Source of the DNA: Epithemia pelagica | Taxonomy: Eukaryota; Protista; Bacillariophyta | Assembly (NCBI GenBank): GCA_946965045.2 | Contig: OX337228.1 | Location: 6,758,001 to 6,822,000, forward strand | Direction of reading: 5' to 3' | Length of the DNA stretch: 64,000 nucleotides | Part shown: positions 2,884 to 61,269 of the stretch, piece after piece | Position numbering within the stretch: the stretch's first letter is position 1 | Layout: each line of letters starts with the position of its first letter | Program-made: the position numbers and the translations under genes | Notes under the pieces: model-generated | Databases searched by the model: none | Told to the model about the DNA's origin: nothing | Seen by the model: only the letters and a program-made list of their open reading frames with translations

Positions 2884-3167
2884 ACAAGAAAACCGTGGGA
2901 AAGGGATGTGAGATCCATTGGCATGAAACATCATTGTTGCTGCGGCTTAGGTTGGTCCATTGTAAATGCATTTTCCATGAGACAGAAGCAATTGGCTTGC
3001 TTGCTGTCCTCCTGTGCGACCATTTTCTCGATGGTAGTGTTGCATGTATGCGAAAGAGCTGCACCAGAGCAGTTTTCAGTACTCCTAGGAATTGCCGTTT
3101 ATTCTTCAAACGACTTGGATATCTTTCTGTTGTGCATTTGCTGCCAAAGATTCGTATAATAGTACTC

Positions 3168-5296
3168 CTAGTAACATCTTCGCTGCACAGAATTGTTGGG
3201 GATTTTTTTCCTTGGGAATTTTACTGCGATATGCACAACGATGCAGGTCTTACTCGCAGGCCTGGAGCTTTCTTCATCGGTTTGCTCTCCTTCACGACAT
3301 ACGACACATTTAGAGTTTTGATTCCTGAAAATTACCGTAGGGTTCATAGACAATCGAAGAAGATTTGTTCCAAACCGCCTCTTAGCGAGAACCACTTCGT
3401 CCATTGATACACATAAAGAAATTGATCCTCTCCACCCGTGTATCGTTGTAAACCTTTCGAAGCAATGGACTGCGTCAAAGATGCGTGCATACTTGCAAGG
3501 TGAGTCGCATCTTCTCCGATATCCGCCCCGACTTGGGCTGAAATCACCAACGAGAAGTAGGCATTGCTCAAGTTGCTTGCCAGAACACTGCTTATCAAGT
3601 TGGCCGGATGAAGGGTCTCTAAATCATTCAAGGCAATTTCCACAGTATCCGAAGCTCGGAACAAGGGCTCTTGATCTTCCGCCACCACGGAAGGTGTTTC
3701 CTTCCATGTTTTGGACCCAAACTCCCGTGTACGCTCCACTGCTAGACTCGATGCTGGTGGTGGTGATGGACATGGTTCAGGATTTGGAGCATCCATGGTG
3801 GACGACGACAAGGAGGATAAAAGTTCTTGAGCTTGCTGATCATCCGTCAAAGCGCTGCGTGGTTGACCGTACCAATCTATAAAGTCTTCCAAGTCGCATC
3901 CACGATTGGCCGCCTTGAAGTCACTCATGTCCGACAACAATTTATGATCGTTGCATCATGTTGGCCACTTCAACAAGTTCTAGAATATCCCTCTGAGACT
4001 ACATTGGTGAAAGCTTGGCGATGCCAAGATTTGAATGACCGTTCATTGCCGAACTCGAAGAGGTACTTTGTTGCCCCAACCATTGTCGTCGCTGAGCCAT
4101 CAAATCGTCTGTCAACGGCAAAGGGCGCTGCAGATAGGGTGCAAAGACTTGATGTCCGTTGCTTCGGATGCTTTGACCTTCGACGGGACAACGGGCCCCC
4201 ATGCGGGTGGTCATCCACGTCGGGACAGGCCCATTCGCCTCTGTTTGGCTGGGTTGGTCCGCGTCATAGTACTGTGTCATTTGCCCGGTATGAAAGGTCG
4301 CCACACTTGGGTCATCCGCAAACGTTCTGCGGGTTTTTCTCGTCGCCTGACTCGCCACGCTTCGAGATTCCCAATTCCCAATACCGAGATGCCTGGCTTG
4401 CAACACTTTGCGCGTCATGGTTGCTTCCGGGTGGAAATGCTTTGAATGTCTTTGTTCCTGCCCCCGGAGGCAAGCTCGTATCAAACCAATCTTCCGTCAA
4501 AGGGCTGTCCGGTTGCAAATGGTTTCGTATCGAAGGCCAATACAGATGAATCGTCCACTTCTGACTCAAACGGACCACCAGCATTCCCATCCCCGGCTTC
4601 CTCCGACGGTAAATTGTAGGTATCCTGAGGTGTGGGATGGTCACGGTACGAAGGAGAACATCGCCTCGCTTGGCTCCACTTTTGTTGTTGGAGGAATCGG
4701 CAGTGGGGACGGCCGGACAGTCCATTCGACCGGCCCCCGATCCACCGCGACAGGGCAACAGGAAGCGGGCAAAGTAGCCATCGCGATAGGCTGTCACTGC
4801 CATGACACAGACACACGAAGAGAGCCAAATTAAAACACACGACATGAGTTCCGCATCAATGTCCAAGAGGCTCTACCAATCCTTCAAGGAGAGTGTTGTC
4901 GATGATGACTGAAGTCCCGAGGCAACACCCACGAGAAACGGCAAGCCATCCTTGAACACCAAACACGACTCTGCCGCACCTGCCTCCAACACGACGGAAA
5001 TTGCAAAAAAAAAGGGCGATGCAGATTTGAAAACTCTGAAAGTAGATTTTCCCAGGAACGAGCGAGAATGAGAAACGAGCCTCCGGATTGTCGTTGTCGC
5101 AAGCCTGAAAGGGGTATTTTTTGGTAGCCGTGGGATCAAAACAGGGCAACATTTTGTGGCGCAATCGTTTGGGCAATCGTCGCAGCAAGGGTTTTTCGTG
5201 AGGATTAAAGTAGGGTTCGTGTTCTTCATCCTTATTGTCATAGTCTTCTTCTTCTTCTTCTTCGTTTTGTTGTTGTTGTTGTTGCGTCGTCGTCAT
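3168..5296 (-). pseudogene. Rab3 GTPase-activating protein catalytic subunit-like pseudogene
   Basis: Rab3GAP1 signatures APYLQRPLPLTDDL and LLSDMSDFKAANRGCDLEDFIDWY lie in different frames. They are separated by a TAG (3999-4001) and a TGA (3956-3958), with no AG acceptor between that TGA and the LLSDM codons. Further apparent frame changes occur near 4860, 4480 and 3400. The 5' limit is uncertain. Confidence 0.75.
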
Positions 5297-5575
5297 CGAC
5301 TTTCTCTTGTTCTTGTTCTTGTCGTCGTCGTCTTGGTTGTGGTTTCGTTGCAGAGGAGCCGTGTCCTCTTGGCTCCGCTGTCCTCGAGGTACGCCCGACG
5401 GTTGATTGTTGTGTAGTTGGGCTGTGCTGCTGCCCTCGACCCTCAACAATGCCCCGAATAAACCGACCCCGCTGCCTCGCACCTCTATGGTCAGATCGCC
5501 AAACAACACGAAACGCCAACAACACGCAACAATCCAACACGCACAAAAACAAATACGAACGAAATACGATTGACC

Positions 5576-6496
5576 ATGATGATGTGTGATTGTGATTACT
5601 GTTACGAAAAGATGATCAGCTCCGAATGGGCTCAGTTAGTTGCTCCTTTTGTGGTTCTCATACTGTGTTACGGTGCCGCTGATGTCCTCGATGAGGCGAA
5701 ACTAATAGTCCAACACCTGCTTCGGGTCATTTTCAACAAGAAAAGTCGTACTACAAGTAGCGAACACGCGGAGCTTCGACACGAACACGCGGAGCTTCGA
5801 CAGCTTCGACACGACAAAGCTCAGCTTCAACAACAGCTGGCCATTGCCGAAGCTAAGCAACAAAAAGAAATTGCAGCGAAGGATGGAGCCTACAAGAAGC
5901 TTCGTCGCGAGAATGCGGCGCTTCGAGTGAGGAAAGTGCGGTCTGGCCGAAAGCTTCGACGCGAAAATGCTCAGCTTCAACAACAGCTTGCTGTTGCCGA
6001 AGCAAAGCTTGCTGCGAAGCAACGCGAGACTCGTCGCCACAAGGATGGAGAGATCGAGATTCGCGATCGCGAGGAGGAGGTCGACGTCGACACTGTTGCT
6101 GTTCTGCCTTGCGAGTTCGACGCTGACTTGGACTTCCCTCCTCTCGCACTCGCAGACGATCTCGAGGACGACGAGGAGACCCCTCTAGTTCCAGTCGACC
6201 GTCCTGAGCCTGAACCCGCGCTCATCCCCGACAACGACGACGAGAACACTTTGGGGCACGACTCACCCCCTCGAAATTCCACCCCTCCTTCCCCCACCCC
6301 CACCCCCACTGAAAAAGATACCTCGCCTCAGATGGATGAGAATGCCCCCCAGAGCGTGATCGAGAGTTCCGCCGGCCCCGAGAACACCCCACATTTGGGC
6401 AGAATCCTTACTGTTGCCTACTCCAAAAAGGCACACGGAATGGTGCACGTTCGACGATCCGCTCGTCTTTTGTCAGCGGGTATGGGTAAAAAATAG
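5576..6496 (+). CDS. Orphan protein: N-terminal hydrophobic segment, coiled coil, acidic/Pro-rich linker, C-terminal RRSARL motif
   Basis: Intact ~306-codon ORF. WAQLVAPFVVLILCYGAA is hydrophobic. Internal DNA duplications are visible (gaacacgcggagcttcgac x2; gctcagcttcaacaacagct x2). It ends HVRRSARLLSAGMGKK and has an AC-rich leader at 5510-5570. Confidence 0.6.
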   Translation: MMMCDCDYCYEKMISSEWAQLVAPFVVLILCYGAADVLDEAKLIVQHLLRVIFNKKSRTTSSEHAELRHEHAELRQLRHDKAQLQQQLAIAEAKQQKEIAAKDGAYKKLRRENAALRVRKVRSGRKLRRENAQLQQQLAVAEAKLAAKQRETRRHKDGEIEIRDREEEVDVDTVAVLPCEFDADLDFPPLALADDLEDDEETPLVPVDRPEPEPALIPDNDDENTLGHDSPPRNSTPPSPTPTPTEKDTSPQMDENAPQSVIESSAGPENTPHLGRILTVAYSKKAHGMVHVRRSARLLSAGMGKK

Positions 6497-6536
6497 AAAA
6501 ACAGAAAAATAACATGTCGGTTGTCGGTTGCCAGTG

Positions 6537-6606
6537 GTACGTGCGCACGTTCGTGTCGGTTATGAATCTTTCCATACTCTCACTCTACCCCTTCTTCTGT
6601 TTCTAG
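6537..6606 (+). other. Putative 70-nt spliceosomal intron downstream of the 5576-6496 stop codon
   Basis: GTACGT donor (the same hexamer is used by several introns in this window), CTCAC branch-like site at ~6579, pyrimidine tract and TTCTAG acceptor. Confidence 0.5.
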
Positions 6607-6675
6607 CGATTGCAAAATTCTACTCCTACTCCTACATCAGCTGAGTCTAGCTCGAGTCCTTGTCGGAGATGTCCT

Positions 6676-6738
6676 TGTTGGTTTGTTGGTTTGTTGGTTT
6701 GTTGGTGTGTTGGTTGTCGGTGTGTTGGTTGTCGGTGT
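6676..6738 (+). repeat. GT-rich minisatellite (TTGTTGGT-type units grading into tgtgttggttgtcgg x2)
   Basis: Read directly; lies immediately 5' of the hairpin array. Confidence 0.75.
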
Positions 6739-6741
6739 TAT

Positions 6742-7085
6742 CACAAAACCCTGGTGGCACGAGGACTTTGTCCTTGTGTCATCAGGTATGGCATGGAGAC
6801 TTCGGTCTCTGTGCCATTTGGGAAGAGTGCCATAGTTGCCCCTGGAGAATCCATTGATTCCTCCAGGCTTCCCAAATTTCACAAAATCCTGGTGGCACGA
6901 GGACTTTGTCCTTGTGTCACCAGGTATGACATGGAGACTTCGGTCTCTGTGCCATCCCAAAATCCTGGTGGTACGAGGACTTTGTCCTTGTGTCACCAGG
7001 TATGGCATGGAGACTTCGGTCTCTGTGCCATTCGGGAAGAGTGCCATAGTTGCCCCTGGAGAATCCATTGATTCCTCCGCTTCCC
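6742..7085 (+). repeat. Modular hairpin array A-B-A-A-B' (candidate structured RNA or element terminus)
   Basis: Module A occurs at 6750-6817, 6888-6955 and 6964-7031. It is a 17-bp stem with a TTT loop plus a 13-bp stem with a c(TTCG)g loop. Module B occurs at 6818-6875 and 7032-7085. It is an outer gggaag/cttccc stem enclosing the hairpin cctggag-aatc-catt-gatt-c-ctccagg (3' arm shortened in the second copy). Confidence 0.9.
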
Positions 7086-7284
7086 TACCCGCTGTATTTA
7101 AGTGTTGGGTTGATCGATAACGAGTGGATTAGTGTTTCGGCTAAAATGTTTCTATATAACATGTAGTGGTAACAATAGCAAGTGGAACATTTGAACATGC
7201 ACGACAACATAGCTGACTAGTGATTCCTAGGAGTAGTCGACAATCAGAGAGGATAAATGGTAATTGCTGTTTAAGTGGCTGAAG

Positions 7285-7625
7285 CTACTTCATGTGCTTC
7301 TTTGTGAGCTTTCTTGCCTTCCCTACACCAGCGCGACCCTTCTTTTTCTCCTCTGCCTCTTCACTTTCGCTGGACTGTTCCGCAGCATGGTCCCCGCCGC
7401 CAAAAGATCCCGTGACGCGTCGTCGTCGTTGAGGTCGTGTTTTCCCAAGGTCGCATTCCTCAATGTCATCTTCTTCTTCGTTTGCTGGGTCCTCCTCATC
7501 CCGGGTGGTTGTCGTAGTCACTTGTTGTTGTTGCTGCTGCAGCAGACGCCGCCGTCGTTGGGGTGGACCGCTGCTTGTGCTTGTACTTGTTTGTGCGAGG
7601 CTTGCCGCTTCTTGCTCTTGGTTTG
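7285..7625 (-). pseudogene. C-terminal fragment of an unidentified low-complexity protein gene, lacking its 5' part
   Basis: The minus frame reads as typical diatom low-complexity protein (QQQQQQVTTTTTRDEEDPANEEEDD...KARKLTKKHMK*). It runs directly into the antisense of the PP4R1-like fragment, with no start or promoter space. Confidence 0.45.
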
Positions 7626-7626
7626 G

Positions 7627-9062
7627 GCTGCCGAAATGAGAGTCTATTGTGCCTACAGTTTTCCAGCCGTCGTGCTCTTGTTGGGGGCCGAAAATTGGAT
7701 GGGCGCCCTGTTGAATCCGAGTTATGCCGAAGAAGATGATGACGAGGAAGAAGTGGATGAAAATGGCAACCCCATTGAGGATGGTGGAGTCGTTCCCAAG
7801 ACAAGGACGGTCGCCTCGGATCCACCCCTTCCCGTCGAGCGGTGTTTGGCCAGTTCGCTCCATACCGTGGCTCACATTTTGGGACCCGAAATTGCCGTGG
7901 CGGATATCTTGCCCGTGTTTACGGATTATTTTTGCGAGATTCCGACGACACCGTTCGACTCAATATTATTGGAGGATTTCCCACCTTTTTGGGCATTTTG
8001 CCTACGACGCAGCATCGGACTGATTTGGTTTTGGCCTGGAGCCGTTTCATGCACGGCGAAGATTGTTTGGGAGCCAAGAAACGATCGGCCACCAATCCGT
8101 TGGTCTTGAATTGGCGCCAACGCGATTTCCTGGCCCGGAGTTTGCCGCTTGCCACCCGAATTGATTCATGCCATGTTTGGCCCATTTGTCAACAATTGAT
8201 CTTTGATTCTGTCAGTCTCATCCGAGATGATGATGTCCTGTGAACCATTCCCATTATGTTCAAAGTGGACACACCTGATACCATTGCGACCAAGTGGAAT
8301 GGGAGAGCCAACGCGGGCGGCAGCGCGAAGAAAAAGTCTTCTCTCATGTCCTCCTCCAACTTCTCTTCCAAGACAGCCGTTTTGGAAATTGTCACGTGGT
8401 TTTAGTACTGAAACTAGGGGCTCCAACAAACAACAATGGCAGCAACAACACCAGCAACACAAGCAATAGTAGCAGTGCTCAGGCACTTCGTAAATCCGTC
8501 TCATCAGTGAGTACGGGTGGTTCAAATGTGGCCATCAATTGTTTTGTCGCTACATTGGATTGTCCTTGCGGTTAAACGAAGAAATTCGAGCCAGTGGCAA
8601 AAAGGATCTAGCGGCAGCCTTGGGGGGGAACCCTTTGCCAGTGTCTTTTGCGGAAACTCCACATAATCGATTGGTGACCTCCACGATAGTACTCGTAGTA
8701 AGGGAAACTTGATGAGGGAGCATCTCTTCGATCAAGCGTGTTGGTCATCTGTTGGTTTGGTCACAGGAAAAGCTCGCCGACTCGTTTCTTCAGGAAACGT
8801 GGCCCAGCAAGAAGGCCTGTTTTTGACATTCCTCCCGTAGTCGTGACAACATAAGTGCTTTGATTTGGCCTCTCAGTCTCCGGAATTGATGATGAGCAAC
8901 GTTCCTCAGGTCCAGGATCTTCTGCTGATTCTACCACTAGATATCGAACATAATGATAAGGAAGTACATTGCTGGAACGTAAATGTTTCCTCTGCGGGGG
9001 AAAAGACCGTATACGCGAGCAGCGACATCGCCCTCATCATGTCGATTCGTCTCATCGTCTAA
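7627..9062 (+). pseudogene. PP4R1-like (protein phosphatase 4 regulatory subunit 1) HEAT-repeat pseudogene, 5'-truncated
   Basis: YCAYSFPAVVLLLGAENW, CLASSLHTVAHILG, LRDSDDTVRLNII and NWRQRDFLA match the C-terminal HEAT repeats of PP4R1. Lesions: frameshift at the T-run 7929-7933, TGA at 8241-8243 and TAG at 8403-8405. The 3' limit is uncertain. Confidence 0.8.
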
Positions 9063-9530
9063 GTACTTGGTTGGATCTTTTTGTTCGCTCAGGGTGTGTA
9101 TCTTGCATGCCGTCGAATTGCTCCGATGTACTTGATGAGTCACTGCTGGAGTATGTGTTGTCATCCCATTCATCGTAGATACTCTTGAACTTTATTGAAT
9201 ACATTTCTTGGGAGATGAGAGCGGGTACTTCAGCTACGTTCGGAATCATGTCTTGTTGGTTCCGCAACAGTCGTTCGATGTCTCTTCTAGATTATTTTTT
9301 GTGAGAACGGGTCCTCCTTTACGTTTATGAGTCTTGGGTCTTCCGTCTTGTGTAGCATGTTGATCCCGTGATCGGCAATAATATTTGACGTCCTTGCTCG
9401 CGAGTCATGTTGAGAATCGAGCGACTGCAAACTACGTCTACTACACGTATATGTATGTAGGGCTAGTGAATGTCCAATTTCAATTTGAGATGATATTTCT
9501 ATGGCGTCGTTCATCGAACTCATTGAACGT

Positions 9531-10750
9531 TCAAGTGCTCTTGAGCAACTTGGCCTCTCGATTCTTCCGTGCCGTTGCTTCTTCGTCTGTCTCCATTCGT
9601 CCACTACTGTATCCACCCTGAGTTCGGTCCAACAAATCCTCAGTATCGTAGGCTCTCGCCGCCTTTTCTTTTCGATTCAAGGCCCTCTTGGCTTCCATCT
9701 CCTTGCGCAACCAATATTCTGCAATGCTCAACATTTTTGCGGGATGCTGTTCAGCTTTCAATTTTTGATACACATCGAGGTCCTCCATTCGACCTTGCCA
9801 GCCACAACTTCCCTTATCGGTGAGGAAAAACAAATGAGAAGCCCAATCATCCAATCCATCTGATAAAGCATTATAAGCGACCAAGACAAGATTGAGTTTC
9901 GTTCGTAAAAGCCAATGATCATGACAGTGTGTGCTTACCAAAAATGTGAGTGGCATAAATGATTGTCGCACGGCGTACATCAGACTCTTTGACCAACCAG
10001 CGCAAGAGATCTTGTCGGACGCAAACGTCCAAGCTCGTAGTGATTTCATCCAAGAGCAGAATCTTGAATGGACGAATCAGACCCAGCAAGATCTGAACTC
10101 GCCGACGCTGACCATCCGAAAGTTGGTGCATCCGCCAGTCCAAATCAATTCCGAGCATATCCACTAATTCATCACGACGTTCGGGATACGACGCTTGCAA
10201 TCGTTCCATCATGTTCCGAACCGCAATGTCCGCCATAAGAGGAACCGCGTTGCCCACAAAGGACACATTGCGCATACCCCAGTCACAATCCAAGCAAGCT
10301 CTGTGAAAATTCAGTCGAGTGTCGTGAAAGGCATTCAAGCCAAGTACTCGGACCGACTGGTCCATTCCATTTTGTACATTGTTGCTGCTGGTCAAGTGAC
10401 GTCCCGCTAGAACTCGAAGCAAGGTGGATTTGCCTTATCAAAACAAAGCACAAACACCATTTCAAAACAGAATCACCAAAGTCAGAATGCCTGTCGATCG
10501 AGACGTCATAACAGCTGGTCAATATCCTCTGGTATCATTTACCTGATCCATTCGCACCAATCAGTAAGCATCGCGATCCTGTCGTCAGTTCCAGGTTCAG
10601 CTTTTGAAGCACCATATTGTTGTTGTACTCGCTGACAATGGATGTTCCACTGTCACTGCTCTTGTAACAAAAGGTCAGATTTTTCACCTCAATGGCCTTT
10701 TCGCCATACTCGGGAAGTGGTGGTAGGGGCTTGGGGGTAACTCCATTCAT
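9531..10750 (-). CDS. Soluble ABC ATPase, CAF16/ABCI-like (3 exons: 10750-10543, 10433-9939, 9859-9531)
   Basis: Walker A GANGSGKST is rebuilt across intron 10434-10542. Also present: signature LSDGQRRRV, Walker B ILLLDE, and YATHIFDGL rebuilt across intron 9860-9938. No TM domain. Confidence 0.9.
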
Positions 10751-11169
10751 GATTGTCTAGTGGATTCTTCTTCTCTCGTGCAGTTCTATTGGAATGGCTT
10801 GCGTCGCAAACTCGTCTGGTTTGTACAGCAAAAATTAATGATCATGGCATAATGACACACAAGAATCGGATGATGGAAAGCGAACAACACAAACAAGGTA
10901 GATGAGATGGATGTCTGCGTTTGTGGCTGCGTCTTTGCAAAATGACGTGTTCTCGTTGGTTCAAAGTTGGGCACTGCTGATGGGTTCTTGATTGCGTTGT
11001 CCCCCGTGCGCACATGCTCAGTCGCGGAGCGAACCAAACTGCCGTGGCACCCAGCATCGTTCCAGCTACGGCTCCATTCGTATGCGCGACCGCCCCATAA
11101 CTCCGGTTTTGACGCGCTCACAATGGTGGGAGACATTGCGCTGTCCATCCGAACGCAACGACGACGATT

Positions 11170-11988
11170 ATGATGATGATGATACAGAACCTCCGCACTC
11201 GACATGCCATTGTACGGTCAAGACTCTGCTTCGCTTCGCCATGTCCTGTTCTTCTTTTGTCGATAACTTTGATATGTCTATTGTTTCTTTCACCAGCTCT
11301 GGCGGATCCAAACTATGAGTATGTACGTGAGGTTTTAGAAGAAGAGGCCGAGTTTCACGATCAGGACAATTCGTACTACCATGAGGATGCCAAGCCTGCA
11401 CAAGACGAGACCAGTGAGTCTTCGAGGCGTGCTCAAGAACGCGATGCAGAGTTTGAAGCCAAGGTCCAACACTTGAGTCGTCAAGAGCAAAAGAAGGCCC
11501 GCCAAAAGAAAAAGCAAGACGCTCGGTTGGTGTCTTGTTTATTAAGAGCATCGGAAAATCGTGATTACTACGCAGTCTTGGGACTCAGTCGCAAACAAGC
11601 CTTGAGTCAGTCGATTCCCCAGTGGCTCAGACGACTTGTTCCCAGTGAAAAACTGCGGTTCTTTGACCTGAGCGCCGCGGATATTCGCAAGGCCTATCGC
11701 AGCATGGCCACCCGTGTACATCCAGATAAGAATCACGATGGTCGAGCGGACCGTGCATTCATGGCATTGGAGGACGCCTACAGTATTCTGTCGGATAAAA
11801 ATCAACGTGAAGAGTACGATGAAACCTGGAGCTTTCAGGCCTGGGATGGATGGAATGATCGACAAACGCGGGTGGTTCAAACCACACAAGCGACTCTCAT
11901 GACAGTCGTACGAGTTGTTACCATGGTCAAGAAAGTTGTAGGACCATTTGCCGTTCCTGTTGGAATTCTCGCGGCTGTTTTCCTTTGA
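11170..11988 (+). CDS. DnaJ/Hsp40 J-domain protein with N-terminal signal or anchor and C-terminal TM segment
   Basis: DYYAVLG...IRKAYRSMATRVHPDKN...AFMALEDAYSILSD...REEYD, with hydrophobic N- and C-termini. Confidence 0.85.
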   Translation: MMMMIQNLRTRHAIVRSRLCFASPCPVLLLSITLICLLFLSPALADPNYEYVREVLEEEAEFHDQDNSYYHEDAKPAQDETSESSRRAQERDAEFEAKVQHLSRQEQKKARQKKKQDARLVSCLLRASENRDYYAVLGLSRKQALSQSIPQWLRRLVPSEKLRFFDLSAADIRKAYRSMATRVHPDKNHDGRADRAFMALEDAYSILSDKNQREEYDETWSFQAWDGWNDRQTRVVQTTQATLMTVVRVVTMVKKVVGPFAVPVGILAAVFL

Positions 11989-12320
11989 AGTCGTCGGCGT
12001 TCCATACTGTTGGAGTCGGTTCAGAATGGTTCTGTATCCTTCAACGTCGGTGAAGCTGTATGCGACTCAAACATTCAAGTGAAGCCGTAGAAGTAGCCGC
12101 CTACCTAGTTTTATGTGCATCAGAGCACTGTGTATCGAAGCTAAAGGGCGGTTGAATTTCTTTCAAGACAACAGATGATGACAACAACGGCAACGTCGCT
12201 CATAGTACCTATTGTAAGCCATTTATTCATTCATGGCAAGAGAAACGTACGTAATATATCCATCAGGATGTTACTATTGAAAATCTTGACTATTCGTGAC
12301 ACAGACTCACGTATTTCTGC

Positions 12321-13967
12321 CTACACTTCTTCCACAGGCACGCCTTCCAGGGACGAAATGGTGCTGTCATCTACGACCATGATGCGGGAGCGCTTTGAAC
12401 AAGGAGGACCCGGTGAGCTTGTGTCCTCAGTGCTGGATGGGAAAACCACTCTTCCTTTTAATAGCATATCCATACTGACCCATCTCCAACCAAAAACTGT
12501 AATGTTTGGATTGTCAACGGAATGTTCAAACAAATAACCTGCCCGTTCCAAGACATTTGTGTGCTCACATTCGTAATTCAATTGGAGAAATAATTTCCAG
12601 GCCTTGCAAACCATTGCCGGTGAGGAAAAGACCTGTACCAAACGACGTGTCTCTGGATTCAGGACTCCGACTCGTCGAACGAGACACAGTTTGTTCGGCG
12701 ACAAGATCGTTCTCGTCCGACACCAAGACGGTGGGGATGGTTCCGACGTTTGTCTCTCGTACTGGTTGATCCGTTCCCACGATTGCCGAAAACTGGCAGT
12801 CTCATCCTTGACGCGTTTGGACAACAAGTGGTCAAAACTCTTGGTCCGAATCGCATCGGCGCGTCGCTGCTGGACTCGCGCCTTTCGAAAAATGACACTC
12901 TCTTCGTGGTTGAACAGAAAGCAGTTTTGCCAAACCAATTCAACATCGTTCAAGGCGCAAATGAGTATATTTTCCAAACGGCCGTCAGACCTATAATACC
13001 CATACCCAAGTTGTGTCAGCACGGTTCCCAGATCCATTGGTTTCTTGACGATATCGGTATATCCCTCCACTCCAGTGACTGGACTGGTAAATTCCATTCC
13101 AAAGTCGTACGATATCAATGTTTGAATCATTTCATACACCATGGCCAACAGTCGAACAGTCTCTTTCTCGGAAGCCTTGGGTTGAAAATGACGATTCATC
13201 AGATTCAAGGCGGATTCTCCGTCGACCAAATCACGTGGAAACCCAATTTGTTCTTGAAAACATTGGGGACACATCCATTTTTTTGTGGTGAGCGCCGATT
13301 GGGACGGTGAAAGGCAGGTTGGATGAAAAGTACGGGGACAATGGTCGCAGCATTGAAGCACTCCAGGTTTATTGCAGACATTGCAGTAACTGCTCCTCCC
13401 ATCTTCCACGCCAGATGTTCGGAACCGGGGGGACAAGGGGTCTTCTCTCAAGTCGGATTCGGCTCGTTTGTTTGAAAACACATAATTGTATTCTTTGGGA
13501 GTGCCCGCCTCAATGAATTGGCCTTCTGAAGAAACTTCGCGAGGAAAGTCGCTCACAGGTACCTGTGGGACCCGTTTTTGTCGCTGTTGTACTTTTGTAT
13601 GCTGTTGTACTTTAGCACGTTTCTGTTTTCGTCGTTGCTTTGTTTGTGGTTTACGTTGTTCTTTTGCCGGTGGTGGTGGCTCTGGTTGAGGATAGAGGGG
13701 TACAACGAAATGCGTCCTAGGATAATGGCTGCTGGTATTGGTTTTTGTCGCGATACCGGGGCGCGAAAGGTAATGCGTCCGTCCTACGGCATCTACATGG
13801 ACGAGAGGAGGATGACGATCGGATGACGGGGTTTTGAGTTCTTCCCTCTTGGCATCGTTTTGTTTGTCGTGTTCCTCTTCTGCTTCACTACTGTTGGAGG
13901 CGACAAACGTACTATCGCTATCATTGCTTTCAACTGAAACGTCCTCGGTGTTGTCTTCCACACCCAT
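12321..13967 (-). CDS. PHD-finger plus bromodomain chromatin protein
   Basis: PHD finger CNVC...CCDHCPRTFHPTC...WMCPQC; bromodomain YTDIVKKPMDLGTV...DVELVWQNCFLFN. The true start may lie further upstream (see findings). Confidence 0.85.
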   Translation of the reverse strand: MGVEDNTEDVSVESNDSDSTFVASNSSEAEEEHDKQNDAKREELKTPSSDRHPPLVHVDAVGRTHYLSRPGIATKTNTSSHYPRTHFVVPLYPQPEPPPPAKEQRKPQTKQRRKQKRAKVQQHTKVQQRQKRVPQVPVSDFPREVSSEGQFIEAGTPKEYNYVFSNKRAESDLREDPLSPRFRTSGVEDGRSSYCNVCNKPGVLQCCDHCPRTFHPTCLSPSQSALTTKKWMCPQCFQEQIGFPRDLVDGESALNLMNRHFQPKASEKETVRLLAMVYEMIQTLISYDFGMEFTSPVTGVEGYTDIVKKPMDLGTVLTQLGYGYYRSDGRLENILICALNDVELVWQNCFLFNHEESVIFRKARVQQRRADAIRTKSFDHLLSKRVKDETASFRQSWERINQYERQTSEPSPPSWCRTRTILSPNKLCLVRRVGVLNPETRRLVQVFSSPAMVCKAWKLFLQLNYECEHTNVLERAGYLFEHSVDNPNITVFGWRWVSMDMLLKGRVVFPSSTEDTSSPGPPCSKRSRIMVVDDSTISSLEGVPVEEV

Positions 13968-14261
13968 CCTCTCAGTCGTTGGGCTTTCTTGTGCTACTCT
14001 TGGATTGGATCTTTTAGGTTCCGCTCTTTGGGACTTTGTGCGGCCTGTGCGGGAAGGTGCATGACTGTCGTTCTAATGTGTTGTTCACGTCAAAATCTCT
14101 AGGGCAGGATGAGCCGCAAGCTATGTCCTTATTAGACACATATTAATTATTAATGTCTGCCATAGCCAATAGCTCTACATAACCCGGATATTGTGGTCGC
14201 GGATCCATTGTCCATGCGCGACCACAAAAATTTGAAGGGTCCCTTTTCCACCAAAAGAACC

Positions 14262-15557
14262 ATGGCGGTCCTGTTGGAAACATCGGTGGGTGATTTGGTG
14301 ATTGATTTGGATCTGGAAGGGTCTCCTGTCTTGTGTCGCAACTTTTTGAAGCTTTGCAAGGCGCGATATTACACCCAATCCTTGATTCATCATGTTCATC
14401 CCAATCGTTTTGTAGTATTGGGCGATCCCACTGGCACTGGAGATGGAGGCACAAGCTTTTATGGTTTGTTGACCGCCATGACGACAAACAAGAAGGATTC
14501 GTCATCATCAGTGTCTCGTAACGAATCATTGTTGGATAATAACGAAAAGAGGTTCTTAGCATCGTCGTCGGGTCGTCGATTGACCGAAGCAGAATGTCGC
14601 GAAAAGGGACGTGTGGTGGCTGTGGAACTCTATGGTCTCCAAAATACCGTGGGGAGTCAATTTTTAATCACCACCACCAGTGGACCCGACAAGGCATTGG
14701 ATGGCTATACGCACCCCAAAGTAGCCTCAGAAAAACAAGAGCAACAACAACAAACGAGTGGATTCTTGTCCTTGGGAAAAGTCGTGGAAGATGAATCGAA
14801 TTTATTGGATCGATGGGCCGATTGTTATTGCGACAAGGAGGGTCGCCCTTATGCCGATTGGAGGATTCGGCGAGCCTTGGTGGTTTATGATCCCTTTGAT
14901 GATCCACGAGCCATGAAAACCTTGTTGCATCAACGGGGCGTGGAGGTTGTTCCACCAGACGAAACGCAAAACGATAAAATGAACAAGGAACCACTGGTGG
15001 TTGCTCGATCTCCCTCACCTGTCCGTCCTCCAGAAGAGACGGTGTCCTCTCGCATTCCAATCGAGGAAGTAGATGTGAATCCAGACGAAGACATCAATCC
15101 ATTGCAAGAGCAACAATTTCGCCAAGAAATTCAACAAAAGGAAGATAAAAGTCGGGCGGTTGTCTTGGAAATTTTGGGCGATTTGCCCGACGCCGACATT
15201 CAGGCACCAGAAAATGTCCTCTTTATTTGTAAACTCAACTCCATTACGACCGATGAAGATTTACAGTTGATTTTGAGTCGCTTTGACGAAAAAGTGTCGG
15301 TAGAGATTGTCCGTGATCAGGAAACGGGGCAATCGCTCAATTATGCCTTTGCCGAATTCACCACACCTCAACAAGCCACACAAGCCTACTTGAAAATGAA
15401 TCAAGCTTTGGTCGACGATCGAAGGATTGTCGTAGACTTTTCACAATCCGTGGCCAAATTGTGGGATCGACATCGACAACGATATCGATCAAAACAACAA
15501 CAACATTCGAAACGAGCGCCATTGTCGGGTTCTCACAAACGACCTCGGCATGTATGA
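14262..15557 (+). CDS. PPIL4: Cyclophilin-RRM protein (PPIL4/CYP59 family)
   Basis: MAVLLETSVGDLVIDL, NFLKLCKARYY, GDPTGTG, and an RRM with PENVLFICKLN and SLNYAFAEF...VDDRRIVVDFSQSV. Confidence 0.9.
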   Translation: MAVLLETSVGDLVIDLDLEGSPVLCRNFLKLCKARYYTQSLIHHVHPNRFVVLGDPTGTGDGGTSFYGLLTAMTTNKKDSSSSVSRNESLLDNNEKRFLASSSGRRLTEAECREKGRVVAVELYGLQNTVGSQFLITTTSGPDKALDGYTHPKVASEKQEQQQQTSGFLSLGKVVEDESNLLDRWADCYCDKEGRPYADWRIRRALVVYDPFDDPRAMKTLLHQRGVEVVPPDETQNDKMNKEPLVVARSPSPVRPPEETVSSRIPIEEVDVNPDEDINPLQEQQFRQEIQQKEDKSRAVVLEILGDLPDADIQAPENVLFICKLNSITTDEDLQLILSRFDEKVSVEIVRDQETGQSLNYAFAEFTTPQQATQAYLKMNQALVDDRRIVVDFSQSVAKLWDRHRQRYRSKQQQHSKRAPLSGSHKRPRHV

Positions 15558-15920
15558 TACTGTTGCTCGACAACCTCGCATGTAGAGAGTGGACGCCCAC
15601 GAAACCACTGTAAAACACGAGATAGACGCCCAATAAACATGTGATTCTAGCGTTGCCAAATTTTTGTCACCCACAAGCCTCCAAGTGAAACCATGATGTT
15701 GTTGCTTTGTAGTTGACTGGGTAGTTGACGGTTCGCCGTTGGTGTCATGCTATTGTAGAACCTTTTCAATACAGCAAGCATGTATGATACGCTCACATTT
15801 CTGGTCAAACCCAAGAAGCAGGGTCCAAATTTGCCTCTCGAACTGATGTAGAGTTGCGAAAAAAGAAACTGTGAATCTAGTATGAATATCATTCAATACA
15901 AAAGCCGCATGGACTACAAG

Positions 15921-16845
15921 TTACGACGCAAATATCAACGGAACTTCTTCTGCCACAGTCTCTTCCATGATTTCAATGGATTGGTTAATGGGTGCAAAGA
16001 ACCAGGGTGTTTCCGATACGACAGCCATTTTGGTAACCCATTCTTCCCAACTATACGAGACAACGGCCAACATGGCCAGTCGTCCATTGCGGATTTCGGC
16101 TTCCTCAAAGGCCTTTTGTTTTTTCGGGTCGGCTGGATACAAACCCAAGGGATCAAAGCCCAACTTGCCGGGTTGGTAGGCTGGATCACCCCGTCGGGCC
16201 TTGGCAATGCCGTACAAATCAATGGCGGCCGTCAACCCAATGCAAAAGCCCCACCAGATGGGACTCACTCGTTCCAAACCGCCATTCAACAAGGAGGGGA
16301 CACGTCCCGTCGAGTCCAAGACTGGATCCAACTCCATTTGACTGGCAATCGCTCGATCCCACAATTCCGACGCGGGCCAACCAACGGCAGCCTATTCACA
16401 TTATGAAATAAGACATGACATTCATGAGACCAAGTTTTCATTGTACGTGAGTCACAGACAAGGAACATGAAACGACACAACAACAACAACGCAAACATAC
16501 CAGCATTGCCAGACGGGCATGTTTGATTTCGGCTTCTCGATATTCCCACAATTGTTCTCGGTTCTTGGCCAATCCTAGCGGATCAAAACCCACATTACCG
16601 GCAAATTGACAATCCACCAAGGGAGCTGGGCATTGCAAAAAGGGAATGGCCTTGGACATGACCACTCGAGGTTGTTGAGTCGGTCGAGGAGGGTCGACCG
16701 AAGAATTTTCGCTCTTGTCGCTTTCTTCCGACAAGGATGACGTCATACTCAAGGGCGAAGACGGGGAAAATGAAGCGGATGAACTGGCGGTGAATACCAG
16801 AGCATTCGAAGTGCACAACATCAATACCGAAGCTGCCTTCATCAT
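15921..16845 (-). CDS. Light-harvesting complex (LHC/FCP superfamily) protein, plastid-targeted (exons 16845-16501, 16391-15921)
   Basis: GFDPLG x2, REAEIKHARLAML and EAEIRNGRLAML chlorophyll-binding helices; intron 16392-16500 is GT-AG; signal peptide followed by a Ser-rich transit peptide. Confidence 0.93.
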
Positions 16846-17018
16846 GGTGGTGGTTCTTGACACTATGCGACAAGTGTGATGCTTGGTCGAATTCTTGTGT
16901 CTCGCAAAAAAAGGGAATGGTCTGAGGAGAGAACAACAGGCCAAATGACTTGGATTGCCCTCCCGATGGTTGTTAGGTGCACCATATGGGGGCACTACTA
17001 TTGTATATGTCTGCTTTC

Positions 17019-17030
17019 TGACGCGCGTCA
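17019..17030. promoter_or_regulatory. Perfect 12-bp palindrome TGACGCGCGTCA upstream of the LHC gene
   Basis: Read directly, ~175 bp 5' of the LHC ATG; two inverted TGACG half-sites. Function is inferred. Confidence 0.35.
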
Positions 17031-17451
17031 TCCAAAGCCACTAGGAGATTCGGAACGACAGTACCGCATGTCCCCCAAGGTGCGACTGCGGGAACGTGCG
17101 GTGCTACACGTACTACCCGTACCACGCCCATGGCCCGCCAGCTCAAGCAATAGAGAGCGTACGCATACGCGAGGACCCGACCTAGCTACCTCTCGAGAGA
17201 AAGGAGAAGGTGAAGCCACAAGCCATGTCGTTATTGCCATCGAGTCAAACCTTATGATGGAAGAAACTGTGCTTGGCGCATTGAAAACGCAAACGAGCAC
17301 TCTCTAGCTACTATAGGTCTCTACTATAGGTCGGAGAAGGGCTTCTCTGTTTGCCCTGAAAAAGAAAGGGTACCTTGGATCCGAACGACATGCTGCAAGA
17401 ACACACATTCCTTCACAGATCTAAACTCAAGTAGTAGTCGTCTTTGAGTTC

Positions 17452-18885
17452 TTAGTCCAAGGAACGCCGCAGTCGTTGAAGGGCCAAAGCCACGGCCCAC
17501 GACAAGACTCCCGACAAGACGTAACCAATCACTTCGGTACCAAGGGCCTGGACTCGTTTCCAATACAAGTCTCGTTCCACACGTTGACGTTTCTCCTTCC
17601 ATGCCTCTTGCGCGTGTCGTGCCGCCTCCAAATCCTCTGCCGTGGACCGCCACGAAATGTATTCAAAATGAGATTCCACCACCTTGTCCAAAATCATTTC
17701 TTCCAGACTGTCTTGGTGTTGTGAGGATGATGATGATGATTGGGGCGGTCTCGACAGCTTTTGCATGGTCCATTGTTGTGCACTTGTAGGTACAGCTTCT
17801 CGTTGTGTGTCGGGTCCCAAGATCCATACGGTATCGTATCGAGTTTCTAGAATATTACCCACCACCAAATGAACTCCATAGGCTTGGACGGCTCGTTCGG
17901 CCTTTTCCCGTAATATGGCCGCGTCGGTTTCCAACTTGAAACTTACACAAAAGGCGGACGGTGCCCATTCGGACCGCAATCGTCCAATTGTTTTGGGAAC
18001 AGGTTTCAAATGCAGTGTCAAACCACCAGCATTGGAAGATTCGTTCTGGTTCTGATTCTTGTTGTTGTTGTGGATTGTTTCAGATGACGATGAGGAGGAT
18101 TGAATCTTGTGTTCGGCCCGTTCGGCTCGAGGAATGTAAAAATCGGACACGGCGGCCGCCAAATAGGTGAGGGCCAAGGAATGACAGGGCTGGAGGGCAG
18201 TGGCACACATTTGTAGTTTGGTCAGATACTCTTCCACTGTTCGAAACGAAATGGTCAAGAGTCGACGCTCCTGTTGAACTGTCGAGAATTCACGCATGGC
18301 CTTTTGGAGTCGAGCTGAATGTTGCAGAGCTCGTGACAAGTGATGACCATGCCCCGTGGGAGTGTCGGCAAACAATATGGATGCGTGCGCATTTGCCATG
18401 GACGACGATTGATACGTGCCACCATCAATATCGTTCTTGGTCAACCAAGGATCTTCTTTTCGCAGCACTTCACGTAGAGATTCCTCTTCTCCTTCTTCAT
18501 TGTCCATGTCATTCATCGCTTCACCCGCGTTTGTGGTACGTGTGGATGGAAAGAGTTTGGACAGCGCTTCTGTATCAAGCCCAAAATGAGGTGGATGGCC
18601 CAGTTCTTGTGCCAAGACTCGTGCATATGGCGATGCCGATCCTTGTCTCCACAAATGAATGACGGCATATCCTCGTCGTAAGAACCCCTCGACTGCCGTG
18701 GCACCTCGGACGCCGGTGCTAAAATTCTCCAAACATCGGACACTGTGCAATTCGAGATCGGCCGCTGTTCCACCTGAAGAAACCAAGGCGATGGGTCGAT
18801 TCCGGTCACCATGCAAGACCACAAAGGCGTCCAAATCTTGAGAGAGTGCCCTCTCTTCGGCTTTTGTCAAGGCGTTCAATACCAT
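17452..18885 (-). CDS. PPCS: Phosphopantothenate-cysteine ligase (CoaB/PPCS)
   Basis: IALVSSGGT, VRCLENFSTGVRGA, YLAAAVSDFYIP, VSFKLETD, VVGNILETR. Confidence 0.92.
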   Translation of the reverse strand: MVLNALTKAEERALSQDLDAFVVLHGDRNRPIALVSSGGTAADLELHSVRCLENFSTGVRGATAVEGFLRRGYAVIHLWRQGSASPYARVLAQELGHPPHFGLDTEALSKLFPSTRTTNAGEAMNDMDNEEGEEESLREVLRKEDPWLTKNDIDGGTYQSSSMANAHASILFADTPTGHGHHLSRALQHSARLQKAMREFSTVQQERRLLTISFRTVEEYLTKLQMCATALQPCHSLALTYLAAAVSDFYIPRAERAEHKIQSSSSSSETIHNNNKNQNQNESSNAGGLTLHLKPVPKTIGRLRSEWAPSAFCVSFKLETDAAILREKAERAVQAYGVHLVVGNILETRYDTVWILGPDTQREAVPTSAQQWTMQKLSRPPQSSSSSSQHQDSLEEMILDKVVESHFEYISWRSTAEDLEAARHAQEAWKEKRQRVERDLYWKRVQALGTEVIGYVLSGVLSWAVALALQRLRRSLD

Positions 18886-19522
18886 GTCATTCGTCGTTTT
18901 CGGAAAAGATTTTCAGAACAAGTTTGACCTGAAAGGATCTGGCATGTAATTTTACTGCGACTAATACTGATGAGAGCTACCCGCTCTACCACATTAATGA
19001 AACCCCATCACAATTTCTCCTACTCTAGCACATTTCATGGGACATGGGACACTTCTAGAACTTGGCCAATTCTGGTGCGAATATCAAGAGCAATGGACAG
19101 CCATTCTTTCTTAGAGAAAAGAGTCTACGCTCGGCCCTGAGAGTATATCATGAAGCCACTCCTACTACAGGAGTACCGTGTTGACAGCTCATGAAGGTCA
19201 AGAGTCCAGCACGTTGTGCAGTGGGAAACCGTTTCTCTCGCGAGATCTAAATTAGGCACAGGAACAATTACAGGGACAGAGTACATCATGCAAGTACCTT
19301 TCCTACGATGTTAACAGCTTCTGACGACCAAGTGTAATGGACAACAGTTTCTCTCTCGATCAACAAAAGATAGATGGAGTAGACATGGAACATGCAACCA
19401 CTTCTATGGAAAGTTGACTGCTGATGATGATCAAGCGCAATGTAAGGTCTGCTGACTGGTACTCGGAAGAACGGCGGGAAATATGAATACTAAAGAGGCG
19501 AAACATCATGTCTATGTTGGTA

Positions 19523-21308
19523 TTACTTGAGAGTTTTGAGGAAAGCTCGCACGTCGTCGCTGACTTCCTCTTTCGGTAACACTTTACCACCTGATTCACC
19601 ACCAGTGACGACACCAACGCCAGAACGCTTTGGTGTTGGAGCTGGAGCAATTGGGGCGGGTGCCGGTGCAGCAGGTTCTGCCTTCTTTTCTTCCTTTGCG
19701 GCCTTTTTCGCGGCTTCAGCGGCGGCCTTCTCAGCAGCAGTCTCTTCAGCGGCCTTTTTGGCAGCGGCTTCATCCGCAGCCTTCTTGGCGGCTGCTTCTT
19801 CAGCGGCTTTCTTGCTAGCAGCTTCCTCGGCGGCCTTCTTGGCAGCTGCTTCTTCAGCAGCCTTCTTGGCGGCAGCTGCCTCCTTCTCTGCGGCTGCGGC
19901 CTGTTTCGTATTAAATCAAGTTAGTCGCTGAAATGCATGAGATTGTATGCGTGTTTTCGACAAGTCTTACCTTCGCCTCAGCCTTTTGGGCCGCGGCTTC
20001 CGCCTCAACGGTTTCTTCGGCAAGCTTGGCTTCTTTGGCGGCGTCATCCTTAGCAGCCTTCTTCAATGCCGAGACTTCTTCAATCTTTCCAACCTCTTTC
20101 TCTGTTAGCTTTTTCTCCAACGCAATATTTCCCTTTTTCAAGGCTGCCAACTCTTCCTTTTCAAGGCCTTCCTTAACTCCAGCAAGCTTGGATTCAGCGG
20201 CGGCAGCAGCCTTTGCTTCTGCCTGGGCCTTCTTTTCAGCCTTTTCTGTTTCGGCTTCCTTCTTGGCCGCTTCCTTCTCTAGCTGTTCGGCTTCCGAACG
20301 CGCAGCAGACGCCTTCTTCAAAAGGCTATCGTAGGAATCATCCGTGGCCTCAGCCTTTTTGACAGTCTGCGCTCTTACAGGGGTGGCCTTATTGGACGAA
20401 GCGGCTTGCTTGGCTTCAATCGCAGCTCTCTTGGCCGCAAGACGCTCTTTTTGGGCAGCCAAGATCTTGGCTCGTGCTTCATCCGAGGCACTGGGAGCCT
20501 TGGTCTCGGACACCTTGGCACTGCCGGAAGATCCTGGAACAGAAATAGAAGGAGCAGAAAGAGGGAATTCGCCTCCACCAAAGGGGTTGGTAAGGATCGC
20601 TCCTGCTGAGACGGCGGCAGCTCCCAAGAATCCCTGGAGAATCCGACGTGTGAGGATCAACTCGCCTATAGATCGACAAACAGACAAGAGGGTAATTCAT
20701 TATAGACTCACCAACGCAGTGGCCACGCCGCCACCATCGACTTCGACAGTCTTGGACGCCTTTTGGGCAGCTTCACGTGCCGCAATTTCCTGTTGGATCT
20801 GTTCACGACGAGCAGCAGTGTTGGCGAGGAAGGAGCGACCAGCACTCAAGGCAAGCAAAGGAGCCACCACCAAAGGCGCGGCACCAAGAGCAATTCCTGG
20901 TCCAACTGCACCAGTATCAGGAACCGATGGAAGATCGACCTTGGGAAGGTCAACCTTGGGAAGACTGGGAGGAGGTGGAGGAACCGGGGGCTTCACAACC
21001 ACAGTTGGTGCAGGCTTAGGAGCCGGAGCCGGCTTGGGGGCAGGCGCAGGCTTGGGAGCCGGATCTGGCTTAGGAGCTGGTGCTGGTTTGGGTGCCGGTG
21101 CGGGCTTGGGCTTTGGGGCAGGTTTGGGTGCCTTCTTTGGCTTCTCGGCCACTTGCGCTGGTGCCGGTGCTCCAAGAAGCTTGGCCTCCAGATCTTCCAC
21201 AGCATTCAGGCTCACAGTGGGTCGGCCAAATCGAGTTTGAGGGAAAACAAACCCGTAGACCGAATTAAGGCCAATCGCAGCCAAAACCGTACTTCTGCTG
21301 AACTTCAT
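19523..21308 (-). CDS. Plastid-targeted membrane protein with PAPK repeats and TolA-like AAEEAAAKK repeats (exons 21308-20712, 20633-19971, 19900-19523)
   Basis: Three ORF segments join in frame through GT-AG introns 20634-20711 and 19901-19970. The signal peptide ends YG-FVFP. Two hydrophobic segments flank a short charged helix. Confidence 0.8.
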
Positions 21309-39897: not shown

Positions 39898-40341
39898 ACG
39901 AAAGGACCATCCTTTCTTCGTTGTGTTTGCCATTGACATGGAGTAGTTGAAGAACGGTTTATTATAATGACCAATTTATATCTGCTTGTCGTGTTAAGAA
40001 TTGTTAGTATGTCTTATGTTTGTATCTAGAGGTGATACCAGACTCTGACATGATTTATGTCGCACATGGGTAGGCAGATTATCAAACAACATACTGTGTT
40101 GCAACGAAAAGGAACTCACACTGTGCAAGAAACCCAACAATCGTAAGAAAGACATGTAACCAAATCACGATAAGATTGAAATCGCCCACTTAGGCATGTG
40201 CGTCAAACCTTGACCGAAGCCTTTTGCATCCATGAAACGGAAGATGATTTTTTCAGGGTCACAGCCGATCATGACAAGGTTAATTTACATGTGTAACAAA
40301 TACTGGCCTGAAAGGTTCTATACTTGAGTATATTATTATTA

Positions 40342-42575: not shown

Positions 42576-42662
42576 CTCGTGATAGCTCAGTTGGTAGAGC
42601 GGTGGACTGTAGAGACATCAGCAACCATCCATCGGTCACTGGTTCGATTCCGGTTCGCGAGA
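42576..42662 (+). tRNA. tRNA-Tyr(GTA) with 14-nt intron (42613-42626)
   Basis: Acceptor stem CTCGTGA/TCGCGAG, D arm GCTCAGTTGGTAGAGC, anticodon arm GTGGA-CTGTAG...A-TCCAT, T arm GGTTCGATTCC. Confidence 0.95.
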
Positions 42663-42748
42663 CGTTTTGTCCAATTATCATTTTGCGTGGAATGACGTGT
42701 ACTTTTTTCTCACTGTAAATCTAGATTTGCCACCGAAGTCAAAAGACA

Positions 42749-60900: not shown

Positions 60901-61269
60901 GCTTCTCGGTCACGCAAACAAAAGAGTGATCATCCATGCAAAGGATTTTCCTTCGAGGCGACGCCTGCCTACCAAAAGAATAGGTCTCGGTCTCGAAAGG
61001 AGGATACTGTGATTATGACATCACGCCAAAAGTGGGACGACGACAACGTTAGTGTGGCCTCGTACTGGTCGACAGCTTCCTCGTTTGTTCGAGCACCCAA
61101 AGCACGAGTGGCCTTGTCCGAAAAGGAGATTGGCGAAGACCTTGCTCTGGAGAATGCATGGATGGATACCGAGATGCAACATCGTGCCAAGGGTGGTGGT
61201 GGTGGAGGAAAGAAGAGAACGAAACCAAGAAAAGTATACCAAGACGACACGATCCATACATCCATTTAA
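51928..61269 (+). CDS. Giant IQ-repeat protein (~3,075 aa; exons 51928-53025, 53140-61269)
   Basis: Two ORFs join through a phase-0 GT-AG intron (53026-53139). About 1,250 aa of Ser/Pro-rich disorder is followed by about 65 IQxxxR(G)-type motifs counted by eye. Confidence 0.85.
58879..59062 (+). repeat. 66-bp (22-aa) tandem repeat, nearly 3 copies, within the IQ array
   Basis: tggcgtaaatacattgttcg starts at 58879, 58945 and 59011; protein WRKYIVRDAYVRYGAARRIQSM. Confidence 0.9.

Follow-up and report, generated by a model that had tools for sequence, protein, structure and literature searches.

The diatom genus Epithemia hosts nitrogen-fixing endosymbionts. In a 64,000-nt stretch of the Epithemia pelagica genome (the window, to which positions refer unless another locus is named), the 3′ flank of a 306-aa orphan gene, just downstream of its stop codon, carries a row of very stable hairpins. 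The row lies between two convergent ORFs—5576 to 6496 (+, 306 aa) and 7285 to 7875 (−)—and raises the question of whether it is kept as an RNA structure on the sense strand of the gene or is a palindromic DNA repeat that travels with it. A sequence-only reading had taken it for a candidate novel structured RNA, either a functional RNA domain or the terminus of an ssDNA element.

The array occupies positions 6742 to 7094 and consists of three 76-nt double-hairpin A modules and two B modules, as read directly from positions 6400 to 7500. Each A module starts with a linker of 8 nt, which is followed by hairpin H1 and, after a single base, by hairpin H2. H1 has 17 bp with two G–U pairs and a 3-nt loop; H2 has 13 bp with a tandem U–G/G–U and a UUCG loop. 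In module A1 (6742–6817, +), the linker is followed by H1 at 6750 to 6786 and H2 at 6788 to 6817, and the module folds at −49.4 kcal/mol (z −9.5). Module A2 (6880–6955, +; H1 6888–6924, H2 6926–6955) has lost one pair to a private G-to-A change at 6929, which does not occur in the other haplotype (L005). Module A3 (6956–7031, +; H1 6964–7000, H2 7002–7031) bears a C-to-T change at 6972 that gives a U–G pair and is also found in one L009 module. The sequence-only reading had described this modular array element by element: every element is present, and single A modules fold exactly as drawn. Its three copy-specific changes (6782, 6972, and 6929) are correctly placed, but the T at 6782 is found in half of the family's distinct A variants.

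Module B1 (6818–6878, +) features an 8-bp outer stem, 15 unpaired nt with GUGCCAUAG, and a hairpin of 11 bp that is capped by a CAUU loop and has a bulge of one nt on its 3′ side. It folds at −23.4 kcal/mol (z −2.9) and scores 84 bits with the B covariance model (R1). Module B2 (approximately 7031–7094, +), at 59.7 bits with the same model, is a terminal variant without the lowest 3 bp of the B hairpin; a variant of this type closes every type I array (see below). Both B modules that had been reported are, hence, there, but B2 is truncated and on its own folds no better than shuffles (z −0.7).

The H1 and H2 patterns match exactly three times each in the 64 kb against 0 expected (pattern scan). 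The repeat periods are 76 and 138 nt (TRF and a repeat finder), with 2.0 copies at 97% matches for the period of 76 (TRF). As a whole, the array folds at −184.5 kcal/mol on the + strand, compared with −112.4 ± 5.1 kcal/mol for shuffles (z −14), and at −152.8 kcal/mol on the − strand (z −8.2); single A modules reach −44 to −49 kcal/mol on the + strand and −32 to −36 kcal/mol on the − strand. The array is far more stable than chance allows, and the + strand is favored, as had been claimed, under RNA and also under DNA parameters. In the minimum-energy fold of the whole array, arms of different A copies pair with one another, which is regarded as a by-product of the repeated palindromes and not as a specific long-range structure. 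A switch or pseudoknot in which GUGCCAU of B pairs with the A hairpins had also been proposed. The complementarity exists, with motif conservation as the one point in its favor, but the idea was dropped because its pairing partners would first have to be freed from hairpins with folding energies of about −20 kcal/mol or lower. Positions 6474 to 6485, the last codons of the gene, and 7083 to 7094, the last bases of the array, form a 12-nt inverted repeat (92% complementary) that brackets the 3′ region; a 6 to 7 bp version is seemingly present in other copies as judged by eye. It could be a closing helix or chance.

The array is the last part of a larger repeated unit. Homology between dispersed copies spans 5394 to approximately 7099 and, hence, comprises an upstream block, the gene, the spacer, and the array (1.7 kb). 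The unit begins with CCCGACGG after unrelated flanks: the 5′ homology limit lies at 5394 against L003, L004, and L007 (blastn), and the flanks beyond it are unrelated by alignment. The upstream block (5394–5575, +), which starts at this shared limit, presumably holds the promoter and the 5′ UTR. The coding part (5576–6496, +) specifies a protein with an N-terminal hydrophobic segment, coiled-coil repeats of varying number, an acidic Pro/Ser/Thr-rich middle, and a conserved basic C terminus. Identities between family genes are 92 to 95% at codon positions 1 and 2 and 88 to 91% at position 3; the gene is therefore real but weakly constrained coding sequence. The family protein has no Pfam match even at E 1, the family profile has no PDB relative, and a full HMMER pass over 1.84 billion representatives gave no relative outside the assembly ERZ21939226. 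Within this assembly, the family forms at least 22 clusters at 90% identity—approximately 50 gene calls on many contigs—with members 64 to 96% identical to the window protein; the genes adjoining arrays encode approximately 260 to 320 aa. The family is fast-evolving.

Between stop codon and array, the spacer (6497–6741, +) has an A-rich tail, two conserved blocks, one rich in GT and one with short palindromes at approximately 6612 to 6670, and a TTGTTGGT/TGTCGGT microsatellite at 6675 to 6738; compared with paralogues, it shows 83 to 89% ungapped identity and many indels. L005 is the second haplotype of the window region (97–99% identical), and the L006 copy lies approximately 50 to 60 kb from the window copy on the same contig. 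Some copies sit inside larger duplications, of 7 kb in tandem at L004 and of approximately 3 kb at 98% identity at L006. At L004, the duplicates 5956 to 12926 and 13227 to 20249 are 95.7% identical, and each holds a whole unit with its array.

The array lies 3′ of the stop codon and on the sense strand of the gene in all 11 full family copies that were fetched (the window, L005, L006, L003, two at L004, L007, L008, L009, and two at L011). These copies cover roughly one third of the 22 or more clusters, and all come from one genome. With the B covariance model, 22 of 22 matches fall on the sense strand of a family gene and none elsewhere in 249,631 bp, and no H1, H2, or B was found away from family genes in approximately 250 kb (BLAST for all three, the covariance model for B). 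The array is the invariable 3′ flank of one orphan family and was found nowhere else. The proposal of a novel structured RNA survives in the sense that the variation described below looks like selection on a single-stranded fold; as an autonomous RNA gene or a ribozyme, the array is no candidate. At L010, a degenerate family gene fragment (P0034) is without array. The region that holds it also contains a reverse transcriptase of the copia type (RVT_2) and part of a MULE transposase, at 3134 to 4804 and 18192 to 18548.

Two types of arrays can be distinguished. In type I arrays (window, L003–L007, and L009), which are built of A and B modules, the order varies: the window, L005, and L006 have A-B-A-A-B; L003 has A-B-..-A-B; L007 and the two L004 copies have B-A-B; and L009 has A-A-B-..-A-B. 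Partial or fused modules are present in L003 and L009. Type II arrays (L008 and two L011 copies) feature one A module, three C modules, and two B-like modules (B′) in the composition A-C-B-C-C-B, and both arms of their H2 are lengthened symmetrically to 16 bp. This lengthening had seemed to go along with an inserted TA in a type II B copy, but the other B copies lack the insertion. The cUUCGg loop, which had been put forward as a defining feature, does not hold up as one: the H2 loop is UUCG in all three window copies and UUUG in L008, in both L011 copies, and in one type I module (L009_A3). H1 loops are UUU, UCU, or CUUG among copies. Module C, of approximately 110 nt, occurs three times in L008 (11193–11304, 11385–11493, and 11530–11593) and also in both L011 copies. 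It has its own hairpin, with G–U pairs on the + strand and a CUCG loop, and in one C copy an extra C-to-T change adds a further G–U pair.

With head-to-tail units whose number differs between copies, the array is a minisatellite by definition. It is also new to the databases searched and known only from ERZ21939226: pattern scans find both hairpin patterns absent from JGI metagenomes, IMG/VR, and GTDB genomes. A full-text literature search gave no match for the accession ERZ21939226. Among public sequences, no transcriptome-derived contig with any family member was found, the matches coming from the ENA assembly only.

What distinguishes the modules from their surroundings is how they vary. 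Seven A modules from independent type I paralogues show 5 (closest window module) to 12 (mean over three) differences in 476 nt, whereas 107 of 798 nt differ in the adjoining spacer (Fisher p 2e-17 to 3e-12). Type I A modules, hence, differ at 1 to 3% of positions as compared with 13% in the spacer and approximately 9% in coding DNA. Within A, 24 of 30 pairs never vary and none has changed on both sides; four vary one-sidedly and still pair via G–U or A–U. Of 350 cells, three are unpaired, one copy each (L006_A3, L003_A1, and window A2). Over A and B together, G–U states occur at 12 pair positions, at least nine of which are fixed or shared by several copies. These departures from the palindrome—four fixed and at least five otherwise shared—are all G–U on the + strand, and there are only three A–C states, each private to one copy. 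Taken as nine of nine shared states, this bias has p 0.004; with tandem CA-to-TG changes counted once, it is seven of seven with p 0.016. The flanks carry no strand bias, with 39 versus 32 singleton transitions over 983 ungapped columns (p 0.48). A neutral palindromic satellite had been expected to show equal disruption of stems in both directions, and this is not seen in the homologous copies. Decay of CpG to TpG, once suspected behind three of the wobbles, accounts for at most 2 of approximately 10 wobbles, of which only approximately 2 are at CpG sites.

The B module varies in a different manner. Between type I and type II, which represent a single split of two lineages, 7 of the 11 pairs of the B hairpin are changed on both sides and 100% of cells pair; in slid controls, no more than three pairs are changed on both sides and no more than 50% of cells pair. 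Four further double changes lie in the outer stem. Both types have the loop sequence CAUU, the same two apical pairs, a bulge of one nt on the 3′ side four pairs below the loop, and the unpaired GUGCCAUAG. The covariation for which genomic copies were to be tested is, hence, present in B—as that single split—but absent from A. In the 3′ arm of B′, 12 of 13 nt agree with the type II minisatellite unit next to it (a match reached by 5 of 2000 shuffles), so the stem was swapped wholesale and not pair by pair, and the apparent covariation is one replacement event, not many independent compensations. The 3′ arm of H1 opens with the 8-nt core of the neighboring minisatellite, a match reached by approximately 3% of shuffles. 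The hairpins were probably born at the DNA level by palindromisation of the neighboring 15-nt minisatellite unit and later kept. Purifying selection on the single-stranded fold of the sense strand would be the simplest account of the strand bias of the wobbles, the contrast in conservation, and the kept geometry of B; these signs are suggestive, short of decisive.

We therefore favor, with a probability of approximately 0.45, a reading of the array as a candidate structured RNA that acts in cis within the sense transcript of the family gene. Position, orientation, conservation, strand-biased wobbles, and retained B geometry are observed; from them we infer transcription and a role. The row of H1, H2, and B hairpins, duplicated along with the gene, would belong to a long 3′ UTR or to the transcribed stretch immediately beyond the cleavage site, where it may act as a structural block of the 3′ end and as a multivalent protein-binding platform, the stems hindering 3′-to-5′ decay or read-through into the convergent neighbor, and the single-stranded GUGCCAUAG together with the CAUU loop of B providing the sequence-specific contact. 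The A-rich stretch and the GT-rich block after the stop codon could, as judged from their composition, be a poly(A) site; if it is used directly after the stop codon, the array is outside the mature mRNA. Variable number and order of modules, the lack of double-sided covariation in A, unconserved loops, and a B′ stem that copies the minisatellite all count against a cis-acting RNA. A bolder version, which we consider improbable, makes the array, and not the weakly constrained protein, the main selected product of the locus: a modular RNA scaffold of the diatom lineage whose B specificity was altered by replacement of a whole stem, which was amplified to dozens with its carrier gene, and which would be read by a dedicated putative RNA-binding protein, for example to localize or silence the gene family.

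If it folds and acts as RNA, the array would be a nuclear eukaryotic counterpart of the bacterial REP-type 3′ palindromes and among the very few structured cis-RNA elements described in diatoms, here attached to a recently expanded gene family. It would also be a clean natural example of hairpins that are born from a minisatellite and then apparently kept via strand-specific selection. If it is a palindromic minisatellite only, it is ordinary and serves mainly as a warning of prokaryote-style gene callers that make spurious database ‘proteins’.

The latter is the main rival, which we judge rather unlikely: a local 15-nt minisatellite palindromised repeatedly by template switching, with units that expand, contract, and homogenize by slippage and gene conversion and that hitch-hike with a duplicating gene, no RNA function being involved. 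Much of the anatomy is as it predicts. Module number and order vary, with partial and fused modules in L003 and L009; the start of the H1 3′ arm and the type II B stem resemble the neighboring minisatellite; A shows no double-sided covariation; loops vary between copies; and the family protein is an orphan under weak constraint. High A identity among type I copies could stem from gene conversion, but gene conversion alone fails to explain islands of 97 to 100% identity inside a spacer of 83 to 89% identity rich in indels. Neutral decay of a palindrome predicts G–U and A–C in equal measure, against which stand the shared departures, all G–U on the + strand, the A–C states, all private, and the unbiased flanks. 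Template switching, moreover, yields perfect palindromes and leaves unexplained why a one-nt bulge is kept in the same place in two unrelated stems.

Two further rivals have little positive support, and both are very unlikely. The hairpins may serve as a signal in DNA or ssDNA, the 1.7-kb unit of gene and array being a non-autonomous mobile or recombination-prone cassette with the hairpins as its terminal recognition structures. This would suit the dispersal of at least 22 clusters (approximately 50 gene calls) over many contigs, the 5′ limit at 5394 shared by several copies, and the placement of the hairpins at the 3′ end of the unit; DNA hairpins also tolerate G–T mismatches, and the + strand is the better folder with DNA parameters as well. 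It is hard to reconcile with a unit that holds no transposase, Rep/helicase, reverse transcriptase, or integrase, whose limits carry no terminal inverted repeats or target-site duplications, whose ends are unlike those of Helitrons, and whose 3′ limit is ragged (in L007-equivalent positions 11406, 11515, 11630, and 11739). Several copies also lie inside the larger duplications at L004 (7 kb) and L006 (approximately 3 kb), and modules are never found alone; the ssDNA-element terminus suggested at the outset finds support neither in element ends nor in enzymes. Alternatively, each 76-nt module or hairpin could be released as its own RNA from a small non-coding RNA gene cluster or a small-RNA precursor. 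The modules are indeed tRNA-sized, in tandem, and highly conserved, with a constant ACA-containing linker between them, but ARAGORN finds nothing in the array, no T run follows the modules, stems of 13 to 17 bp are shorter than those of Dicer-type precursors, and no module occurs away from a family gene. Stems that are perfect and without internal pocket, with a gap of 1 nt between H1 and H2, are also unlike those of H/ACA RNAs. A search of Rfam 15 with positions 5500 to 8500 gave at best 16 to 21 bits against gathering scores of 37 to 80, and the type II array of L008 reached 18.7 bits against 42; the earlier statement that no hammerhead, HDV, twister, pistol, SECIS, IRE, snRNA, or CRISPR pattern is matched by eye agrees with Rfam, in which nothing comes near threshold.

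Individual classes were considered and rejected on anatomy. H/ACA snoRNAs have two hairpins joined by an H box (ANANNA) hinge, an ACA located 3 nt before the end, and pseudouridylation pockets inside the stems; the stems of the array are continuous, without internal loop, only 1 nt separates H1 from H2, and Rfam gives no match. Pre-miRNAs are likewise ruled out on anatomy, and tRNA or tRNA-like genes by the lack of a cloverleaf in the array (ARAGORN). Hairpins of the UNCG tetraloop class share the C(UUCG)G closure with H2 of the window, but C(UNCG)G is not conserved among homologues of the array, several of which have UUUG. A MITE or foldback transposon is not compatible with H1, H2, and B that occur only 3′ of family genes (approximately 250 kb) and with the lack of inverted repeats and target-site duplications. 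Helitrons begin with 5′ TC, end with 3′ CTRR behind a single short hairpin, insert between A and T, and, when autonomous, encode Rep/helicase; the unit opens with CCCGACGG, has a variable 3′ limit, and contains no Rep/helicase domain. As in Helitrons and IS200/IS605 elements, imperfect hairpins lie near one end of the unit and strand matters; the array differs from both in having no Rep or Y1 enzyme, no Helitron-type termini, a ragged 3′ limit, and three hairpin types instead of one terminal hairpin.

A protein-coding repeat is rejected since periods of 76 and 138 nt place successive modules in different frames. Both strands of the array are open by chance (ORFs 6610–7071, +, and 6637–7068, −), and this has given rise to public ‘proteins’ (P0001–P0010). 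A prokaryote-style gene caller made a 143-aa ‘protein’ (P0001) of the array, and searching with that ORF found further arrays in ERZ21939226; in a family member of 436 aa (P0028), the reading frame continues from the gene into the array.

In its putative function, the array comes closest to REP/BIME elements, organellar 3′ inverted repeats, and multi-hairpin elements of 3′ UTRs; in structure, it comes closest to a palindromic minisatellite. In plastid and organellar mRNAs, inverted repeats downstream of coding regions form stable stem-loops that define and protect the 3′ end. These are single hairpins, whereas the array is nuclear and multi-module and has a conserved single-stranded motif. Multi-hairpin elements of 3′ UTRs, such as the yeast ASH1 zipcodes and the histone mRNA stem-loop, bind proteins, and their structure outweighs the sequence of the stem; the array has no sequence or Rfam match with them, and its stems are much longer and nearly perfect. 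With template-switch minisatellites and quasipalindromes, it shares head-to-tail units of variable number and arms related to a neighboring direct repeat. Symmetric decay of both strands is expected of such repeats, whereas all shared departures here are G–U and the modules are better conserved than the flanks. REP/BIME elements resemble the array in being short stable palindromic units in variable arrays, after stop codons and between convergent genes, and they are considered to influence the 3′ ends of mRNAs; a recent preprint describes them as local 3′ UTR regulators. The array differs from REP/BIME in being nuclear and eukaryotic, in being tied to one gene family, in the lack of a RAYT-type transposase, in its longer stems, and in showing no sequence similarity. 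A literature search for comparable elements in eukaryotes yielded palindromes from organelles and bacteria only.

The genes of the window are eukaryotic; among their products are DnaJ, a cyclophilin-RRM protein, chlorophyll a/c-type antenna proteins, and bromodomain/PHD (a 548-aa bromodomain ORF). Among the named matches of the cyclophilin-RRM protein, Epithemia clementina ranks first (69% identity), followed by Nitzschia and other Bacillariaceae at approximately 53 to 55%, which points to a raphid pennate diatom near Epithemia. The convergent ORF 7285 to 7875 (−) has a C-terminal stretch that is approximately 66% identical over 44 aa to a 568-aa ORF of L007 (11734–13437, −), pieces of which also lie beside the L003, L006, and L009 copies; the motif RRSARLL occurs in both the protein of the convergent ORF and the family protein.

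The window contains further repeats. At 40391 to 41118, a 243-nt unit occurs approximately three times at 97 to 99% identity, with weaker copies up to 41718, inside overlapping long ORFs (40324–41133, +, and 40342–42099, −). Tandem repeats of 66 nt (22 codons) lie at 58789 to 59118 inside the ORF 53242 to 61269 (+, 2675 aa), and a GC-rich tandem repeat of 27 nt (9 codons) with approximately seven units at 19710 to 19898. The sole tRNA of the window according to ARAGORN, a tRNA-Tyr (GTA) of 88 nt, is located at 42576 to 42663 (+), and its length suggests an intron. A 589-aa ORF at 22129 to 23898 (−) has a NUMOD3 motif (DNA-binding, homing-endonuclease-type), which is unusual for a nuclear contig of a diatom. 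A chlorophyll a/c-type antenna gene is contained in two ORFs, 15921 to 16364 and 16438 to 17031 (−), and is presumably split by an intron; the N terminus of its product features a signal peptide and, after it, an ASF motif, an arrangement found in proteins destined for complex red-type plastids.
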